DNA from: Fonticula alba ATCC 38817
Lineage: Eukaryota; Protista; Nucleariida
DNA length: 40,322 bases
Reading direction: 5' to 3' (one strand)
Assembly: GCA_000388065.2 (NCBI GenBank)
Contig: KB932203.1
Positions within the stretch are counted from its first letter, which is position 1. The number at the start of each line of letters is the position of its first letter. Positions 2,729 to 31,560 of the stretch are shown one piece after another. The notes below the pieces were generated by a model that did no database searches, was not told the origin of the DNA, and saw only the letters and a list, made by a program, of their open reading frames with translations. A program made the translations under genes and the position numbers.

Positions 2729-3925
2729 TCAGGCCTCAATGTAATCGAAGTCTTCCGGGATGTTGAAAGAGGCCCGGAACTCCGACGGGGCGAGGGAGAA
2801 TTTGTTCGAGCAGTAGGACTGGATGTTGAACAGGTTGTCCGTCCAGCGGTTGGCCGCATCCAACAGCTCCTTGGTCTCCTTCTCTGTGGGGTCCGGTCAG
2901 CGGAGAGGGTGGGCGGGAGGGAGGAGTGGGAGAGAGAGAGAGAGGGAGAGAAGGTAGGGCGTGGGTCGACGTGGTTAGGGCACGGGTATCCAGGGCAAAG
3001 GAGGTGAGCGGGCAATGTGGTCATCGGGCGACATACGCTTGGCTTCGATGACCTCCGGGTCCATGGCCTTGTATTTGTCGATCTTCTCCCGGAGACGAGC
3101 ATTCTCGGCCTCCAGCGCTGCGAGCTCAGCCAGGTCCCGGGTCCGCTCTTCCGAGGGGGGCCGAGTGAGGAGCGCCTCGTCAAGGTCCGATTGGAGTTTG
3201 GCACGCTTTTGCCGTTCGTCCTCTACCGAGGCGGCAAGATCATCGCGGCGGCGCTTCGTCTGGGCAGCGGCGAAATCCAAATGCAGGAGTCAGGGGGGGA
3301 CATCTCGATCGGCGCTGCATGGTGTGTATGTGTGTGTATGTGTGTGTGTGTGTGTGTGCGCATACCCCCTGGACAGCCTTGCTGGGGAAGGCCCAATAGT
3401 AGATGGAGGAGCCAACCTTCTCGGAGTCCACAATGCGATCGTCGACCAGACTCTGGAGGACCTCTTTGACAGTTTGCGAAACTACATCCCAATTGGGAGC
3501 GAGGGGTCAGTCGCCGAGCCGGGCAATGACTGGTACCAGCAACAAGGGCTTTGACGCACTAATTCCCTTTTGAGCCGGGCAGATGCGCTCGAGTTCCTTG
3601 ATGTTAAAGAAACATTTCTGCCATGGTGGGGGGGGGGGGGAGAGGGAGGGGAGTATCGGTGAGCAGGGGAACATGGGAGCAACGAACGACGCGCAGATGT
3701 GCGCGCGACGAAGGGCACTGGGCGAGCGCGCACCGTCTCATAGAAAAGTTCCGTCATGCGCTTGCGCTTCTCCTCGAAGCTGAGGCCCTTGGCACGCTTG
3801 GACTAAAGGCGAAGTTAGGGGAAAGGTGCTCGAGCGGGGGGGGGGGGAAAGCTCGGAGAGAAGGGAGAGGGGAGGAGAAAAGGGGGAGGAGAGGAGAAAA
3901 GGGGGAGGAGAGGAGGAGGTACCAT
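2729..3925 (-). CDS. MND1: Meiotic nuclear division protein 1 (partner of HOP2)
   Basis: Exons on the minus strand: 3925-3923 (ATG only), 3802-3734, 3617-3560, 3481-3366, 3259-3037, 2883-2729; all phases match. Product: [77 protein letters not shown]...[21 protein letters not shown]...[12 protein letters not shown]. This matches the MND1 winged-helix plus coiled-coil pattern end to end. Confidence 0.96.
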
Positions 3926-21900: not shown

Positions 21901-23746
21901 CCCTGGCATCGGACTGCCTCGAATGGTCTGGCCTCTCGCCTGGCACTCGCCTGGGTATGTTCCCCCCTGTGACGTTGGCTGGCTTCCCGCTCGCGCCCTG
22001 ACCAGCCGGCTGTTCGCCCCGACGTGCTTCTTTTTTCCTTTCGCCCGCGCGGCCACAGCCATCGGCCTTGGGCTTGGGCTTGGGCTGCTGCTGCTGCTGC
22101 TGGTCCTTCTGGGCGTGGGTTTGGCACTGGTGTTCTTCCTCCGGCGGCGACGCAATGTCAAGGGCCAGGTACGATGCGCTCGCGGGACGCGCCGGGGCGT
22201 GGGACGTCCTCCCCTCTTCTCTGGACTGACCGGTCGCTGGCCCGCATCGCGCGGCCCACCTGCTTCCTCGTGTCCTCTCCCCCGGCCCCAGGCCGAGGAC
22301 GATGCCGGTGCGCCACTGCCTCTTCGCCTTGCGCACACCTCCCTGCCTGTGCCCATACAGCCCCGCCGGCCGTGCTGACGCCCCCCCCCCCCCCCCCTCT
22401 TCCCCTGGCCACCACCATCGCACGTGCGCCCGCCCGCCCGCCCGCCCGTCTGGATACACCCCCCCCCCTTGCCGAAGATGCCACGGTTCTCAATACGATT
22501 GTCGGTGCGTCGAACGACAGAAGCCCCCCTGGACGCCGTCGCCATTGCGCCATCCTGACCGCCGCCCGCCTGTCGAGCCAGAGCTCTCCCTCCCGGGCTC
22601 GATCCTGGTGAGCCTGGAAACGGACTTCATGCCGGTGGACGGCCACAGCGACCTCGGCACCGGGACCCAGGCGGCGGTGTACGCGGCGCGGGCCATCGGC
22701 GCCGGGACCGCCGACCGCCTGGGCTGCCCGCCGACCGTGGCCATCAAGCGCCTGAAGGAGGGCGCCGCGCGCAGCACCACCCAGATGGCCCTCTTCCAGA
22801 ATGAGGTGGCCCTGATGTGGCTGCTGCGCGATGTGCCGAATGTCGTGCGGCTGTACGGGTACAGCGATGCCCCGCCGGCCATCGCGATGGAGCGCTATCA
22901 GACGGACCTGTCGACGCTCCTCCATTCGGAGATCCCCCTCGGCACGGGGGCGCTTCTGCACATCATCCACGAGTGGGGTACGCTGGCGCGGCTTGCCGGC
23001 CCGGAGCTTCTCGGCCGGCTGCCCCCGGGGCTTGGCACTCTTCTTTTTTCTTTTTTTTTTCCCTTTTTGGCTCCCCACCCCCCGGCGCAAGTGCCCGCAC
23101 TCACCGCCTCCCGGCGTCAGCATGCGGCCTGGAGGCCATGCACGCGCAGGGCATTGCCCACTGCGACTTGAAGCCGGGCAATGTGTTTGTCACGCGGCGC
23201 GCGGATGGCGCCTGGCATGCGGCCCTCGGCGACCTGGGGACCAGCCGTAACCTCTCCGAGCGGCGGTCCAACGCCCTGACCGCCGCGCCGCCGGCGCTCA
23301 ATGCCCTGACCGCACGCTACGCTTCCCCCGAGGTGCGATCTGGCCCGCGCCCCGCGCCCCGCGCCGTCGGCCNNNNNNNNNNNNNNNNNNNNNNNNNNNN
23401 NNNNNNNNNNNNNNNNNNNNNNNNNNNNNNNNNNNNNNNNNNNNNNNNNNNNNNNNNNNNNNNNNNNNNNNNNNNNNCCCCCCCCCCCCGCCCCGATGCG
23501 TCCGCTCGGGCGCCACGGCTTGCAGGCGAGACATTCGACCAAATCATCTCGCTCGTGCTGTCCGGCACCCGGCCACCCATCGAGCAGGCCACCGCGTCGC
23601 ATGCGGCCGCCTTGGCGGCCATCCAGCCGGTCATCGACCTGCTCTGGCTCCTGTGGAGCTCCAACGCCGACAGCCGCCCGATGGTCGCCGTCCTCCGGCA
23701 GAAGGTGTCCATGGCTTTGCAGATGGCCGGCGGCCCGGGCGCCTGA
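15929..23746 (+). CDS. Receptor kinase B: paralogue of A with the same architecture; one kinase exon is probably hidden in the gap at 23373-23477
   Basis: Start MSHPPQRRRRAARPPGAALPPGYLLQFLALLAALFLPAAP (signal peptide). Exons 15929-about 17342, 17701-21954, TM exon 22059-22168, micro-exons 22292-22307 and 22478-22504, 22582-22977, 23121-23332, last exon about 23527-23746. Kinase motifs GTGTQAAVY, VAIK, HCDLKPGN, DLG, RYASPE. Confidence 0.93.
20771..21873. repeat. Arm 2 of the inverted repeat; coding stalk of kinase B
   Basis: As above. Identity also covers about 20148-20257 versus 9141-9250, up to the gap in A. Confidence 0.95.
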
Positions 23747-24172: not shown

Positions 24173-25893
24173 ATCACGCGGGGTGGTGTTGTGGGCTCGA
24201 TGGAGCACGCTTCACCCACAGGGTCGCGGCTGGACCCGGCGTTTGGGCTGCGCCCCGTGCCCCGCCGGCACCGTTGCTTCCCCTGTCACCCGGCCGGCTG
24301 GCCGTCCGGCCGTCCGGCCTCTGCCGGTCCTGCCCCCCCCGGGCGCTGGCGCTCCGCGCGCGCATTCGGGCATTTTGTTGCGCTCGCCGCCTCGGGCCCG
24401 TGCGCATGTAAAATGTGCATGCAGGCAACTGTGCACTTCTCCCTGCGCCAGGCAGCCGTGCTTGCATGCGCATGCCCGAGTGAGTCGGGGCAGGATGAGG
24501 GGGGGGACGAACGGGAGAGGGTGCGCCAGCCCCAGGCAAGCTGGAGGCTGTTCGGGTGGACATGGCATTTACCTCCCACCGGTCGGCGTGGGCCACTCCG
24601 GCATGGGTGCATTTTTCGCCCGGGGCGCGCGCTCGGCCCGCCCCCAATTGCCTTGACGCCGGTGCCGCAGCATGCCCATCATCCACCGGGGAGGGGGGGG
24701 CGGCGGGGGCGAGAGCTGTCTGGCAGGTGAGCTCAAAACCCCGGGCGGGTGCGCTGCCCCTCGGTACTTCCTTCCCCCCGAGAGCATTGGGCGTTTCTCC
24801 GGGTCCCCTGTGGCAGGATGGCTGCAAGCCGTCGGCCAGCGCCAAACCCGGGGGGGTAGGTCGAAACGATGGTCTGCGTAGCGCCGAGGCGCAGGCAGAG
24901 CGCGCAGTCATTGGGTACCGCTCTTTGGGGTCTTCCCGCCGCCGGGAGCTGCTCCATGGCCTCTACCGCGTCGCTGAGGCGCCGAGGACCATCTCGCGCG
25001 GGCCGAGGGGCTGGTGGCCGGGGCCTGTATGCGCCGGCGTGCGGGGCGTCGGTCATCGCGTCGCCGGGACCGCCGGCCACCGTGCGGGCGCCCGCGCGCC
25101 GAGCCTGCCCCCCCCTCCGGACGCCGGGGGCCCCGCCTCACGGGGGCCGGGCGAGTTAAAGATCCCCGCCGGCGGGGGGAGGGGGGCGGTTTGGTGGCGG
25201 AAAGGCCGATTGCTATTGCGCGCACGTTTGCATGCGTGTGTGGGTGTGCGCGCGCGCGCGCGCCTGCATGAGAGAGGGAGAGAGATAGATGGGACATGCG
25301 ACCGCGCGTGACGCCCCGTTGGCGTCCGGCGAGGGCCCCTTGCCTGCTCCGGCGCAGCATCCGCGACCCATGTGGCGATCTGGGCCCGGGCCCGGGCGCG
25401 TGGGTTGCGCTCATCCTCGCTGCTGTGGCATCCTGTGGATGGGGATCTGCGGGGCTGCGCAGGCCTGCTTCCCAGGGGCAGGCGTACGGGGAGCGGTGTA
25501 TGAGCACGGGGGCGCGGGGGGGGGGNNNNNNNNNNNNNNNNNNNNNNNNNNNNNNNNNNNNNNNNGGGGATTCACGCACGGGCTTGGGGGCGCTCGTTGG
25601 CTCCTCGCCGCGGTCCCACGGCCAGGGGACTGCTCGCGGACGGCAGAGAGGCCAGCCCCCGGGCGCCCCGGGGACGCCCCGGGTGGCGTGCACTCTGTCG
25701 GGAGCTGATGGCACACATTTATGTCCCCCACCTTGCGCAAGGGCGCACCCAGGCGCCCTCGGCATCCACCATCCAGCAGCCACACACACACACACACACA
25801 CCCTCTCCCCTCTCCCTCCTCCTGCCGTGTTTGTGCCCCCCACACCTTCTGGATACACCGCGCTTGCCCCTCCCCTCCTCTCCCCTTCGCCGT

Positions 25894-26065: not shown

Positions 26066-29000
26066 ATGTCCACTGCCACTGGGCATGCCGTCTATGGCGG
26101 CGGCACCGGGGCCTCCTCAGCCGCCTCCTCCCGGCACCAGCTCCCCTACCGCCCGGGTCTGCCGACGTTCCAGGGCTCTTCGCCCTTCATGCACAACGAG
26201 GACCCGGAGGACGGACGCCAATCGGCCACCGGGTCGCCGGAGTCCCAGCGCCACGCCGGAAGCCAGAAGTTCGCCGACCCGGCGGACTTCGGCGCCGCAC
26301 CCCCAGTCCTCCACTCGGGTACGGCCCTATGCCCGCCCTTCTCTCCCCGCCCCCCCGCCCCCCCCCCCACACACACACACCCTGTCCAACTCGATGCTGC
26401 CAACACAGCACCGGGGCGGGCCGGGGCCGCGCGGCGCCGGCGCGCACTCCCACGCGGGCGGGCGCCCCCTCAGCCCGTGCCAATGGACTAACCGCCATCG
26501 CGCCAAGGCCTCTCCAGCGGCTGGACCATGGAAAAGGACCCCTCCGGTCGGAGGTACTTCAGCAGGTGCGCACACACGCCGCGGCGCCATCGACTCCGTC
26601 ACATTCCGCGGCCACACCCGACCTGCCAGCCGAGCCTGACCATCGCCGAATGCCCCGGTGGGCCGGCGCTCGCACCCTGCGGCCGGCCGCCCGGCCGCCC
26701 GGCACAACATCCAGCTCCTCGCTCCAGTCGACCTCCTGGTTTGACCCGCGCATTCCGCTCGAGCGGTACTCGTCTTTTGGTATGCCCCCGGGCCCGGCGC
26801 AGTGGCATCGGGTGTTCCCCCGCACCCAGATGCCCTGCGGCCCCTGGCAAAAGTGCCGCACATACACACACACACACACACATCATGCTGACTCGGCCGT
26901 GCCCCCTCCGACGCCAGATAACCCCCCGGCCCCGGCCTTTGTCCGGACTGCCAAGTACATCCTGCGCGACTCGCGTCAGTATGGCTGTGCGTGCGAAGAG
27001 GACACTGCTGCGCCCTCGCCCACGCCCGCGCCCGCCCCCCGCCCCCCCTCGCCATTACCATCCCCCCGGTACCTGACCATGCCCACGCCGCCGCGTGCCA
27101 CACCTCCCACCCCGGCCCCGGCCCACCTCCGTGCCGCCGCGCACTTGCTGCCACAGTCTCCTTCCTTGACGGCGATCGCCTGGTGCGCAGCGCGCGCGCC
27201 TACCGGAAGGAGACCTCCGGCGCGCGCATGCGCAAGGGTGACCTCGAGAAGATGGTCCGCCAGGCGATGCGCTCCGCCCGGGACTGGGTGGCCCAGGGCC
27301 TGCAGGAGAGCCCCTACGCCAAGCCCACCCCGCCGGCCGACCCGGCGAGCGTCACCGACGCCGCTGTCTCCGAGAAGGACACCGAGCTGAATGCCGCGGC
27401 CGGGCGCGTCACCGATCGCGTGTTCTCCCTCCTGGACCTGTGCGTGGGTCTTGCCTCTCGAGGACCGGTCCCCGGGCGGGGGACTTTGCGCAAGCCCCTG
27501 TGACTGACCGGGACACCCCCCCGCCCCCTCCTCCTTCCCCGCTTCCCCGCTTCCCCGCTTCCCCGCTTCCCCGGACCCACTCGCCCCAGGGAGTATCAGC
27601 AACATTGCGAGCTGCGAAGCGGCCTGATCGCGCTGGCCTTCATGAGTCGCATCCGCTTCCGCAAGAAGCTGGAAGGTGCGTGTACATGCAGACACACACG
27701 CACACACAGACGCATATATGGGCCTTGTTCATGCCTCGGATGGCAGGGGCTGTGCGCCCCCCCCCCCCCTCAAGACGCGGCGGGGGAGGCAAACGGCAGG
27801 CCGAGCACACAGGCACACACAATGCCGACACCCCCCCCCCCCCCGGCGGCCGGATGATTGACACCTCCCTCCTTCACCACACATGGGGACTCGCACGCGC
27901 CCACGCCTACATCCAGTGGTCGCCGACACGCTCGACACCACGGGCAAGCGCATGCTCACCGTCGACCACATCACCTTCCTGCTGGAAACCCTGCATCAGG
28001 TACGCCGACGAGGGGTGCCCCTCACAATGTGCCGTCCACATGAGCGCCACCCCCACTGACACGCGCATTGCCTGGTCCCGGCCTCGCCCACGCTCCCGAT
28101 TCCGATCCGCTCCCCCTCTGCCTGCCGAATGCCGCGCAGCTGATCGAGCACCCGGACTACCGGTATCGCCTGCTGATGCCGGGCCAGGCCAAAGTCCAGG
28201 CGAAGGTTCGTGGCCCTGGACACCGGCGCCCGCCTTGCGAGGAGCTGCCAAACGCTAATGCCCCCCCCCCTCTCTCCCACCGTGCCATGCTCTCCCGGGC
28301 CGCGGCTTCGGTCCGGGCTCGCCCACCCACAGCGCCTTCTTTTGGTGGCGGCCACCGGCAATCCCAACGCCGCCGACCAGCCGGCCGTCGACCAGAGCGG
28401 GTCCATCATCCTCGGCCGGCGCGCTGGCGACCCGGAGGAGGTGTCGGCCACCCAGCTGGCGGACTACATCATTGGCGGAGTGGAGCACCTCCGGAAGATG
28501 GCCAAGAGCCGGAGCCGCAAGCGCGACAAGAACCTGCCCGACAACTTGGTCGAGGAGTTCGAGCTGGAGCTGCCCGATCCGCCGGGGCTGCCGCCCATCC
28601 TGCGGGCCTTCCGCATGATGGAGCGCATTGACGCGGCGGAGCGGGGTGCGTGCTCGACACACGACGGGCGGCCTGGCTGTGGCGGTGCACCGCCCCCCTT
28701 CTGCCACCGCTCCGGCATGGAGAGCGATGACGTGAGGGAGGAAGGGCACCGGGGCGCCACGCAGGGCAGAGGGGGGCGGGGGGGGGGCCACCTTCTGCTT
28801 CTCCTGGGCGCAGGGACTTTCGCCGACATTTGGGTCCCATCTTGGAGACGCACATGCAGCTATTCACACACACGAACACACACACACACACATACATGCA
28901 TACATATACATCGCTCGTAGTTACCCACGAGGGAACCATCTGCGCCGCCTGCAGTGCCAGCCCCATCCAGGGGCTTCTGTATGAACTGGCAAAGCCCCAT

Positions 29001-30927
29001 AGCTTGTCGCCGCCGAGCTCGCGCGGGGCTTCGCACGACGGCACTTCGCCGGCGCCCGGCTCGTCGGCCGGGCCGGCCACCGATTCCAAGCGCAAGTTGA
29101 GCTTGCGCTTTGGCGGGGGCAGGAGCCGGTCCACCGGCGACCAGGCCGCGGCCCCCGGTGGCGGCACGGCGGCCACCGGCCCCGGGGCTGCCGGCGACAA
29201 GGCCCCCGAGAGCCGCACCGTGTCGGCCGGCCAGGCAGTCGAGACCACGGGCACGGATTTGTGCGCGGACTGCTTCTGGGCCGGGCGCGGGCCCGCCACT
29301 CTAACTCCGGCCGCCGGGGCCGGCGCCGGGGCCACCCCGCCCTCGCCCTGGCTTCTCGGGACCCTGTCGCCCTTCTCCCGGCCGCTGGATGCCGACGACG
29401 CCTCGGGGTCCGGCGCCAAGACCGCCGCCACGCTGCCGCCGCCCCTCAGCCCGGGCCTGGTGGCGGTGGAGCGCGCGCGCTCGGTCACCCGTCGCCGCTC
29501 GGCCGGTCCCAGTCCCCTGTCCCAACAGGCCGGTGCCGCTGACGCCGCGGCCGATGCCGCCAAGAAGGCCGACAAGAAGAAGTCCGGCATGCGGGGACTA
29601 TTCCGGTGCGTCCCCGGGGGGAGAGGGAGAGCGTCCCGCTGCCCGCATCGAGCCCGCCAAACAGGGCTGGCCATGCAGCAGCGGGGACGGGCAGCACACC
29701 TCGCGGCGAGGAGGGAGCCAGAAGGGGCGCGCAGGAGCAGGCCGAGAGAGGCCCTCACCGCGAGCGGGGTGACGCCCGGCCTAGGATACATGGCATGGGG
29801 GGTGCCAGGGGGGAGGGCCGCCATACGGGCGCAAACAACACACTTCGCCGACGGCCACTGACAGCCAGACCATGCTGTGCCCACACGTGTGCGGGGCACC
29901 CGCCGCCGCGACCGGTCGTGTCGCGCACAGGCGCATCAGCAGCGGCCCGCTGGCCGGCGGATCCGGCACCCGCCGCGACGCCCCGGCCGCCGGGCAGCAG
30001 CCCCCCGCCGCGCACCACCACCCCGCCCTGTCGGAGGAGCACCAGGCCATTGCCCGGTCGCTCAGTCGCGAGGAGACCGCCGTGACGGATCTCCACCAGC
30101 AGCAACGGCAGTTCCACGAGACGGTTGGTGTGCAGCCGCTTTCCCCGGGCGGGGTGGCCTCCTACTCGCCGGAGGACGACCACGACGACGAGGAGGAGGA
30201 CGGCCATGACAACGAGAGCCACCACCATGGCCACCGTCACCATGACGAGCATTCCGACGGCTACGACAGCTACGACAGCTACGACAGCTACTACTCCGAC
30301 GAGGAGGAGGACGAGGACGAGGAGGAGGATGAGGAGTATTCCGACGAGGAGAACGCCCGGGTCGGCACGATCCCGAGCCGCCACCACCACCACCTGCAGC
30401 AGCAGCAGCAGCACGGGCGGTACGCCCATGGCGCGGGGCATGTGGCCTCGGCTGCCGGGGCTGCGGCCGTGCGCACATCGGTCGCTGCTCCTGCCGCGTC
30501 GCGCGGCCGCACCGGCGGACACCCGCATGATGATGGCCATCACAGCCACGACGACGGGTCGTACTCGGACGAGCCCGAGGAGGAGGATGACTATGACAAT
30601 GAGGAGGAGGAGGAGGAGGAGGAAGACCATGGGGGCCATCTCCATGAGGCCCACCAGCGTCAGCACCACCGGCACCTCAAGGTGGCACCCTCGACGCGCA
30701 TGAGCCACTCCCAACATCATGGTCATCATCATGGTGAGGATGGCCGCCGGCATGAGAGCGATTTCAGCGCCAGCAATGATGAGCATGATGATGAGCATGA
30801 TGAGGAGGAGGATGAGGACCACAGCGACGTGGAGTACGGCCAGGGAGCTGGCGGCTCGGCTAATGTGGCTCGCCCGGCGGTGGCCGCCATGCACCACCAC
30901 CATCGCCACCCCCCGCGCCAGCAGGCC

Positions 30928-30958
<31 letters not shown>

Positions 30959-31089
30959 GTCACTCGCAGGATAGCTTCTACTCTGACGAGGAAGATGACC
31001 AGGAAACCGACACCGAGTCGGTGTACCATGACGCGTCGGAGTCCGCTTCGGATATCGACAGCCCGGTGGTGCGTTCGGTTCGTGCGTGA
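26066..31089 (+). CDS. Short dystrophin/utrophin-like protein: WW, dystrophin-type EF-hand region, ZZ finger, His/Asp/Glu-rich tail
   Basis: Exons 26066-26318, 26508-26565, 26715-26779, 26918-26974, 27157-27439, 27590-27675, 27917-27999, 28140-28205, 28333-28645, 28921-29605, 29931-31089. All ten introns are GT..AG with matching phases. WW: LSSGWTMEKDPSGRRYFSSSSLQSTSWFDPR. Further colinear segments: AFVRTAKYILR, FSLLDLEYQQHCELRSGLIALAF, DTTGKRMLTVDHITFLLETLHQ, EVSATQLADYI, RIDAAERVTHEGTICAACSASPIQGLLY...[11 protein letters not shown]. The start codon and last-exon end are less certain. Confidence 0.82.
27533..27572. repeat. Intronic 8-bp minisatellite (CTTCCCCG)n, about 5 copies
   Basis: Read directly from the sequence. 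Confidence 0.9.
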
Positions 31090-31560
31090 ATGTGCAATCC
31101 CGAGCACCGTGTACCGCACGACGACCGGAGCGCATATCCCCGAGGCCCCGAGAGGGGGGGACGCGCGCGGAAACGCGGCATGCCATCGGAAAGCCCGCCG
31201 GGAAGATCCCATGTGGTGTGCAGAGTGCGAGCTGCTCCCGCTGCCGTTGCTGGGGGGAGGGTCTATGCCCTTTTTTAAGGACCGAGGGATGGTGAGCATG
31301 CCGAGATGCGGATACTCACACAGACACACGGGCAGATGCATGTCTGTGTGTGTGTGTGTTTGTGTGTGTTTGTGCGCATGCGCAGACGGGCACATAATGT
31401 ACTGTAGGATAGACAGGTGCCACGCTCTTTGGGCAGAACGGGGAGGGGGGGGGGGGGGGAGGGGGAACAGGAGGCGCCTACCTAGATCAAGGAGCCGGAT
31501 CTCAAGCAGGAGGAGAGCGTGGTGGGAGAGGGGGCGGCGGAAGGGCCTGCCTGATCCGCC

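Follow-up and report, generated by a model that had tools for sequence, protein, structure and literature searches.

Is the WW-EF-ZZ cassette of dystrophin a possession of animals and their closest unicellular kin, or is it older? The question is raised by a gene of Fonticula alba ATCC 38817, a slime-mold-like amoeba that belongs to the fungal side of the Opisthokonta (Holomycota), outside the Holozoa. The gene, H696_01926 (P0001), lies in the window analyzed here, a 40,322-nucleotide (nt) stretch of contig KB932203.1 (assembly GCA_000388065.2). Its annotated span is 26066-29861, and its product of 738 amino acids (aa) bears the UniRef name "WW domain-containing protein." An earlier reading of this DNA from its letters alone (the sequence-only reading) had seen in it a dystrophin-type module and had guessed the host to be a holomycotan amoeba such as Fonticula; the host is indeed filed under Opisthokonta, Rotosphaerida, outside the animals. 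We think it probable that this intact Fonticula gene encodes a WW-EF-ZZ adaptor whose family is the closest relative outside the Holozoa of the dystrophin, utrophin and DRP2 cassette as well as of the EF-ZZ segment in dystrobrevin and dystrotelin. The gene was already annotated, as a WW protein only; what is new is a divergent, free-standing WW-EF-ZZ family outside the Holozoa.

Previous work has placed dystrophin at the root of the Metazoa (Adams and Brancaccio, PMC4582122), and in published surveys dystroglycan turned up nowhere outside the Metazoa (PMC4582122). Components of the dystrophin complex have been listed for Capsaspora (Suga et al., PMC3753549), a 2023 review describes dystrophin as absent from unicellular organisms (PMC10293626), and the dystroglycan-binding cysteine-rich domain has been traced only to choanoflagellates and Capsaspora (PMC4582122, PMC10293626, PMC3753549). 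Our literature searches found no paper relevantly linking dystrophin with Fonticula or Holomycota.

The gene and its environmental relatives

Eleven stretches of the plus strand between positions 26066 and 31089, joined as the sequence-only reading had proposed, give a 3,120-nt frame closed by a single terminal stop. All ten introns run GT..AG with matching phases, and seven of the ten have GTGCG or GTACG donors. Exons 1 to 10 reproduce annotated H696_01926 through residue 654. In alignments to four intron-free or cDNA-like homologues, junctions 2/3, 3/4, 4/5, 5/6, 6/7, 7/8 and 9/10 are crossed without gaps, which supports these seven junctions independently of the annotation. The G+C content of the gene model by codon position is 0.67/0.57/0.88 (0.88 at the third position, GC3). 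A CTRAY motif is found 16 to 82 nt before the acceptor in eight of the ten introns, with an AG-free tract between the two, except that in intron 10 two AGs stand right at the motif and the tract is otherwise AG-free; introns 6 and 9 lack such a motif. These motifs suggest distant branch points with an AG exclusion zone. H696_01926 is a genuine, intact, multi-exon gene.

We searched exhaustively with phmmer for relatives of residues 80 to 560 among 1.84 billion representative sequences. Of the 35 proteins returned, 30 match the WW region only, and four homologues match behind the WW domain (P0002, 1e-19; P0003, 4e-13; P0004, 2e-10; P0005, 8e-10). These four are environmental; their sources are one JGI sample (3300031411), a pair of SRA runs (SRR10968375 and SRR32944840) and one metagenome at ENA (ERZ28594394). 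P0002 (368 aa) and P0003 (373 aa) are complete; they start a few residues before the WW domain, after in-frame stops, and end shortly after the ZZ finger. All members have in common the order WW, four EF-hands, ZZ; the homologues are compact, and the WW domains of the relatives exceed the Pfam cut-off with 37 to 38 bits. The apparent loss of the WW domain in P0004 arose because the gene caller missed four upstream junctions. Conserved motifs of the family are DRVFSLLDL, LxExPxYRY and the finger H..C-x2-C..PI-x-G-x-RY..C-x2-C-F-W-x-G. The family-invariant residues are all kept in Fonticula, whose protein differs from its relatives by three specific inserts, two of about 30 and 37 residues and one of about 85 that falls inside the ZZ.

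An environmental orthologue (L002) has introns at the positions and in the phases of Fonticula introns 1 to 4, including the same codon split as T and TC. At this locus (L002:2200-2700; ENA ERZ28594394, scaffold_11955), the protein P0036 was mis-called, as at least four upstream junctions encode the WW domain and the first helix. The donors are of the Fonticula-like type GTRCGY, and the remainder of the gene is intronless. The source of L002 is probably an unsequenced relative of Fonticula.

A word-indexed protein search with the stop-free stretch containing exons 3 and 4 gave a single protein, H696_01926. Besides the Fonticula protein itself, such searches returned only P0037, a fragment with several WW domains of the NEDD4/Rsp5 type that was discarded. 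JGI metagenome contigs, scanned with a pattern, gave no further relative. A feature search of the ESM Atlas with residues 85 to 560 of P0001 placed fungal clusters that combine a ZZ with canonical EF-hands nearby (Mucoromycota, 842 aa; Ascomycota, 971 aa). These clusters might represent further holomycotan EF-ZZ relatives, with scores in a range where chance matches are common.

Links to dystrophin in sequence and predicted structure

The best PDB match of P0004 is dystrophin (8YT8_E; E-value, 3.8e-9), in an alignment to dystrophin residues 3275-3364 that starts in the last EF helix, takes in linker and ZZ and ends with a V/I-E-Y-x-T-x-x-T-x-G motif. A family profile that includes the Fonticula protein and the WW domain matches dystrophin at 8.4e-13 in one colinear stretch (profile positions 22-313 against chain positions 1-295), which makes dystrophin the best PDB match of this profile other than multi-WW proteins. 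Together with the structural matches described below, this result supports the claim of a stand-alone dystrophin-type WW-EF-EF-ZZ module. With the WW domain left out of the profile, dystrophin was the top PDB match (1.9e-11), nearly tied with hippocalcin over the EF region (3.2e-11); dystrobrevin followed at 2.9e-9 over the linker and ZZ, and other ZZ proteins of the PDB (MIB1, HERC2) scored 5e-4 or worse. As judged from these profiles, the EF block keeps a more general sequence, like that of the neuronal calcium sensor (NCS) proteins, so that what ties the sequence specifically to dystrophin is the stretch from the last EF helix through linker and ZZ to the short post-ZZ motif. A hidden Markov model (HMM) of three homologues, from which Fonticula was excluded, found the two ZZ halves in order in the Fonticula protein, at residues 408-447 (26.5 bits) and 533-548 (4.9 bits). 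By chaining alignments from Fonticula through P0004 to dystrophin, we reproduced three of the five residue parallels that the sequence-only reading had drawn: that of the helix preceding the ZZ and those of the two ZZ halves, the first one and the one with CFWAGR.

The structure of Fonticula residues 80-560 was modeled with AlphaFold2 (AF2) from a five-sequence alignment, with a predicted template modeling score (pTM) of 0.59 and predicted local distance difference test (pLDDT) values of 70 to 90 in the core. The model contains a three-stranded WW domain and four helix-short strand-helix motifs, with disordered inserts. In this prediction, the two EF-hand pairs form one block with the WW domain docked, as in 1EG3, the dystrophin WW-EF fragment bound to the β-dystroglycan peptide. 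At E ≤ 0.001, Foldseek found only two matches in the PDB, dystrophin 1EG3 and 9C3C_D, the latter being dystrophin within its native complex. Using VIA-align, the best PDB match was 1EG3 (Z, 18.8; 222 residues), which upholds the superposition on dystrophin WW-EF that had been proposed as a check. Next came 9C3C_D (Z, 18.0; 245 residues, covering dystrophin 3040-3315) and then a further chain from the 8YT8 complex entry (Z, 17.6; 203 of 206 residues; 2.9 Å). NCS-1 (Z, 11.1) and recoverin (Z, 8.7) came in a second tier. Identity to dystrophin is about 11 to 15% in the structural alignments.

Among Swiss-Prot models, the top 15 matches are DRP2, Drosophila dystrophin, dystrotelin and dystrobrevins, after which the E-value rises 5-fold, from 4e-3 to 2e-2. 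The P0002 model matched 9C3C_D in the PDB (2.4e-8; template modeling [TM] score, 0.61), and dystrophin-like, utrophin-like and dystrotelin clusters came on top in the AlphaFold Database (AFDB). In the ESM Atlas, the four best clusters for P0002 all carry EF-hand_2, EF-hand_3 and ZZ (TM score, 0.65 to 0.67), and the Atlas's own model of the Fonticula protein agrees with a dystrophin-superfamily match. The agreement of these models, predicted from a shallow alignment, across libraries and for two family members is strong.

Taken by itself, the Fonticula protein says much less. Searched whole against Pfam and the PDB, it matched only WW domains, and no match to the dystrophin entries of the PDB was obtained from its sequence alone. 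The WW domain, directly N-terminal to the EF-hand region, has YAP1- and NEDD4-type WWs as clear PDB matches (YAP1 WW, 4e-7 with phmmer), and the AF2 model shows it as three strands in a sheet, superposable on ITCH WW3 at 0.8 Å. Of the domain models that the sequence-only reading had suggested running, Pfam WW (residues 86-115) and ZZ gave matches in Fonticula that stayed under their cut-offs (16 to 17 versus 26.9 bits and 12.1 versus 21.4 bits, respectively). Generic EF-hand models of Pfam likewise remained under their cut-offs, and searches of Pfam and the PDB with single exons were uninformative (DUF7917 at 14 bits, ZZ at 12 bits and chance matches to PCNA). The Fonticula sequence alone is weak, and on that evidence the dystrophin reading would have been rejected.

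Several further findings weigh against a kinship with dystrophin. The sequence-only reading had named a lack of hits to the dystrophin-specific EF-hand models as grounds for giving its claim up, and that is literally what was found: EF-hand_2 (PF09068) and EF-hand_3 (PF09069) gave no match at E ≤ 10 in the Fonticula protein and its exon pieces, nor at E ≤ 1 in the four relatives. A profile restricted to the EF region matched neuronal calcium sensors, at 1.8e-10 for the best of them, with no dystrophin or dystrobrevin among the 60 matches listed. The ZZ scores below the Pfam cut-off in every member of the family (12 to 19 versus 21.4 bits; 17.7 to 19.2 in the relatives), and in Fonticula the model meets only the second half of the finger, with an E-value of 0.18. 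Both C-x2-C pairs of this finger are present in Fonticula with about 85 extra residues between them, Leu replaces the Arg of the RY found in the relatives, and the VEY strand is absent. The AF2 models, based on the five-sequence alignment only, have a mean pLDDT of 59 to 66 and leave the ZZ unfolded. Three probable RNA runs (2012), very sparse, contain no splice joints, and some of their contigs include intron ends. Finally, the function of the Fonticula protein is inferred entirely, by analogy.

Origin and proposed function of the cassette

The rival that these findings favor most is convergence, that is, the independent joining of a WW domain, an NCS-like four-EF-hand domain and a ZZ in the Fonticula lineage. 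It would account for an EF-only profile that matches hippocalcin, NCS-1 and recoverin (1e-10 to 1e-6) and not dystrophin, for the missing EF-hand_2 and EF-hand_3 matches and for a WW sequence closest to YAP/NEDD4-type WWs. We nevertheless regard convergence as unlikely, given that the ZZ and its flanks are nearer to dystrophin and dystrobrevin (1.9e-11 and 2.9e-9) than to other ZZ domains of the PDB (5e-4 or worse), that a single colinear HMM alignment runs from WW to ZZ, that the EF block fits chains of the dystrophin complex with Z scores of 17.6 to 18.8 over 203 to 245 residues versus 11.1 for an NCS protein, and that 15 of the 15 top Swiss-Prot structural matches belong to the dystrophin superfamily. 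Phase kept across ten introns without a stop, a strong codon-position G+C contrast, seven junctions gapless against homologues and the retention of all family-invariant residues speak against a decaying or mis-modeled gene, be it a pseudogene or an annotation artifact of a GC-rich genome. This is the least probable of the alternatives, even though a G+C content of 69% gives many spurious long open reading frames (ORFs), for example, one of 546 aa antisense to exon 11, the ZZ is disrupted, inserts and a low-complexity tail are present, and RNA evidence is sparse and includes an unspliced read at intron 10.

Horizontal acquisition from a holozoan or an animal would make the cassette uninformative on the opisthokont ancestor. 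The distribution is patchy, with the cysteine-rich domain reported by surveys only in animals, choanoflagellates and Capsaspora (PMC4582122, PMC3753549) and only five family clusters among the 1.84 billion representatives, as a transfer might leave it. Such a transfer is nonetheless very unlikely in view of the low identity to dystrophin in structural alignments (about 11 to 15%), of ten host-type introns with GTGCGT donors and a host-type GC3 of 0.88 inside a 3.6-Mb scaffold, and of the four intron positions shared with the environmental orthologue. NCS-like sequence features, lost from animal dystrophins, also persist in the family, in better agreement with an old divergence. Kinship by descent leaves the question of age, on which we are more tentative. 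The family may be a holomycotan survivor of an ancestral WW-EF-ZZ adaptor that stood behind dystrophin and dystrobrevin, predated dystroglycan and the fusion to spectrin, and drew its EF-hands from a recoverin/NCS-type sensor, a scenario to which we give somewhat less than an even chance. The origin of the cassette would then lie in the opisthokont ancestor.

The cysteine-rich region of dystrophin, utrophin and DRP2 (1EG3, 9C3C chain D, 8YT8 chain E) has the same domain order and spacing as the family. Both carry H-x(2,3)-C-x2-C...PI-x-G-x-(R)Y and C-x2-C-F-[FW]-x-G-R, the V/I-E-Y-x-T motif of dystrophin is present in the relatives of the Fonticula protein, and both have degenerate EF loops and lack the second C-x2-C pair of typical ZZ fingers (of the ZZ cysteines, only C1, C2, C5 and C6 are kept). 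Unlike dystrophin, the Fonticula protein has no calponin-homology (CH) domains, spectrin rod, recognizable syntrophin site or coiled-coil, the latter judged without a coiled-coil predictor having been run; conversely, it has three lineage-specific inserts and a long acidic, His-rich tail, and it lacks EF-hand_2/3 matches. The likeness to short Dp71-type isoforms that the sequence-only reading had pointed out holds up to the ZZ and breaks down beyond it, where an acidic, His-rich, low-complexity tail follows. Its statement that no CH or spectrin coding sequence lies upstream was borne out, as Pfam gave no such signal in the ORFs of the 2.3 kb between the gene and the kinase gene that ends at 23746.

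Dystrobrevin and dystrotelin match the family in the EF block and ZZ, both by structure and by profile (2.9e-9 for linker and ZZ). In contrast to the Fonticula family they have no WW domain, and they carry syntrophin-binding and coiled-coil regions not seen in Fonticula. The NCS family (hippocalcin, neurocalcin, NCS-1, recoverin) likewise has a compact four-EF-hand domain and forms the structural second tier (Z, 8.7 to 11.1). However, NCS proteins are free-standing and N-myristoylated and have canonical loops, whereas the Fonticula block is internal, flanked by WW and ZZ, and has non-canonical loops. The cassettes of unicellular holozoans (including those of PMC3753549) are, similarly, pre-animal dystrophin-type cassettes or parts thereof. 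They were found by BLAST with human dystrophin, a route for which the holomycotan Fonticula family has diverged too far.

By analogy with dystrophin, the Fonticula protein would be a cytosolic adaptor composed of a WW domain, four degenerate EF-hand-like motifs in two pairs, a linker helix, a one-zinc ZZ and a disordered tail. The WW domain would pack on the first EF pair to create a composite groove that clamps a proline-rich partner peptide, plausibly the cytoplasmic tail of a membrane protein, and the ZZ and linker helix may stabilize this peptide-binding surface. The EF loops are devoid of canonical ligands, with, for example, His, Ala or Gln instead of Glu at position 12, which makes calcium sensing unlikely; they are presumably too degenerate to bind calcium. 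In HMMER alignments, the place of the WW pocket His of YAP1 and ITCH (F-L-N-H-N, x-N-H motif), which reads the tyrosine of PPxY, is taken by Ser in Fonticula and by Glu in the family consensus. The binding of a PPxY tail, which the sequence-only reading had cited for animals, cannot be carried over; with this His replaced and dystroglycan found only in animals (PMC4582122), a classical PPxY motif is an improbable ligand.

If the proposed kinship is true, the origin of the module would move back at least to the opisthokont ancestor and may predate animals and their closest unicellular kin, and the module would be shown to work without dystroglycan or a spectrin rod. The relatives, at about 370 aa, are small and tractable proteins with which to ask what the original ligand of the cassette was, and the NCS-like EF sequence offers a testable origin for the degenerate EF-hands of dystrophin.

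Exon features, the 3′ end of the gene and its surroundings

The features of the gene are collected in the table below. In exon 5, DRVFSLLDL is the most conserved motif of the family; its columns are invariant in alignments A1-A5, and the AF2 model gives helices and short strands for this exon. The linker helix encoded by exon 9 has a counterpart in P0004 and in the family profile that aligns with dystrophin 3275-3305. The insert in the same exon (28472-28570, …KRDKNLPDNLVEEFELELPDPPG…), absent from the relatives, has weak matches to archaeal PCNA sliding clamps (E, 0.02 to 0.03); this likeness was set aside as probably a chance match. For exon 4, an alternative donor at 26974/26975 was dropped for the annotated one at 26986/26987 (GTGCGT); the homologues carry the extra ...GF residues. 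CA repeats or poly-C runs occur in several of the ten introns (26319-29930).

Features of the H696_01926 gene model, with positions in the 40,322-nt window
Feature	Position	Strand	Content	Support or remark
Exon 1	26066..26318	+	Start codon and 85-residue low-complexity N terminus	Model equals annotation; no Pfam match
Exon 2	26508..26565	+	First WW half (GW...GRRYFS)	Pfam WW; CTAAC 16 nt before acceptor
Exon 3	26715..26779	+	Second WW half (STSWFDPRIP) and linker	Intron position and phase common to L002
Exon 4	26918..26986	+	First post-WW helix (APAFVRTAKYILRDS...GF)	GTGCGT donor at 26987, homologue-supported
Exon 5	27157..27439	+	First EF-hand-like helix-loop-helix, ~30-residue Fonticula-specific insert, DRVFSLLDL	
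Exon 6	27590..27675	+	Second EF-hand-like motif	Homologue alignment, profile, AF2
Exon 7	27917..27999	+	Third EF-hand-like loop (DTTGKRMLTVDH, non-canonical) and exit helix	Aligns with hippocalcin EF3 via family profile
Exon 8	28140..28205	+	Conserved LxExPxYRY after EF3	Invariant L, E, R and Y columns
Exon 9	28333..28645	+	Fourth EF-hand-like motif, ~37-residue Fonticula-specific insert, linker helix into ZZ	
Exon 10	28921..29605	+	Split ZZ-like finger and disordered region	Low AF2 confidence
ZZ first half	~28926-28983	+	H..CAAC..PIQG..Y	In exon 10
ZZ second half	29241-29288	+		In exon 10; ~85-residue insert separates the halves
Intron 10 (proposed)	29606..29930	+	GTGCGT...CACAG	CTGAC 69 nt before acceptor; coding to stop 29861 at NCBI
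Exon 11 (proposed)	29931..31089	+	385-residue acidic, His/Ser/Tyr-rich low-complexity tail and stop	Unannotated

The 3′ end of the model departs from the annotation, which leaves intron 10 unspliced and reads through to the stop at 29861. Exon 11 is in phase, with a GTGCGT donor, a CAG acceptor and, after a CTGAC motif, a tract that is largely free of AG. Its G+C content by codon position (0.80/0.44/0.81) contrasts with the flat values of the read-through tail (0.71/0.72/0.76). An acidic C-terminal tail is also found in the homologue P0004, positions 30634-30832 and 31117-31200 are covered by contigs from probable RNA runs, and Pfam gave no match for the exon 11 tail. A contig of low depth, from a probable RNA run, extends 11 nt into intron 10 and speaks against exon 11. 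Another contig (region 29400-29616) ends exactly at 29606, where the first base of intron 10 is also that of exon 11. This end and the 11-nt intron read are compatible with mixed spliced and unspliced transcripts, and exon 11 is probably the correct 3′ end rather than the annotated read-through.

H696_01926 is located among ordinary genes on the 3.6-Mb scaffold KB932203.1, with the 2195-aa kinase gene upstream and a DDRGK gene on the other side. The window has a G+C content of 69% and six assembly gaps. One run of N (25526-25565) falls in the 2.3-kb upstream spacer, a 40-nt gap that could hide a small upstream exon; another (23373-23477) falls inside the kinase gene. The 546-aa antisense ORF (29755-31395, minus strand) has a high content of Leu, Val and Ile and is a mirror image of the exon 11 acidic tail, with the same G+C pattern by codon position in reverse. 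Most likely it arises as a by-product of a coding strand that is GC-rich and GAN/CAN-rich.

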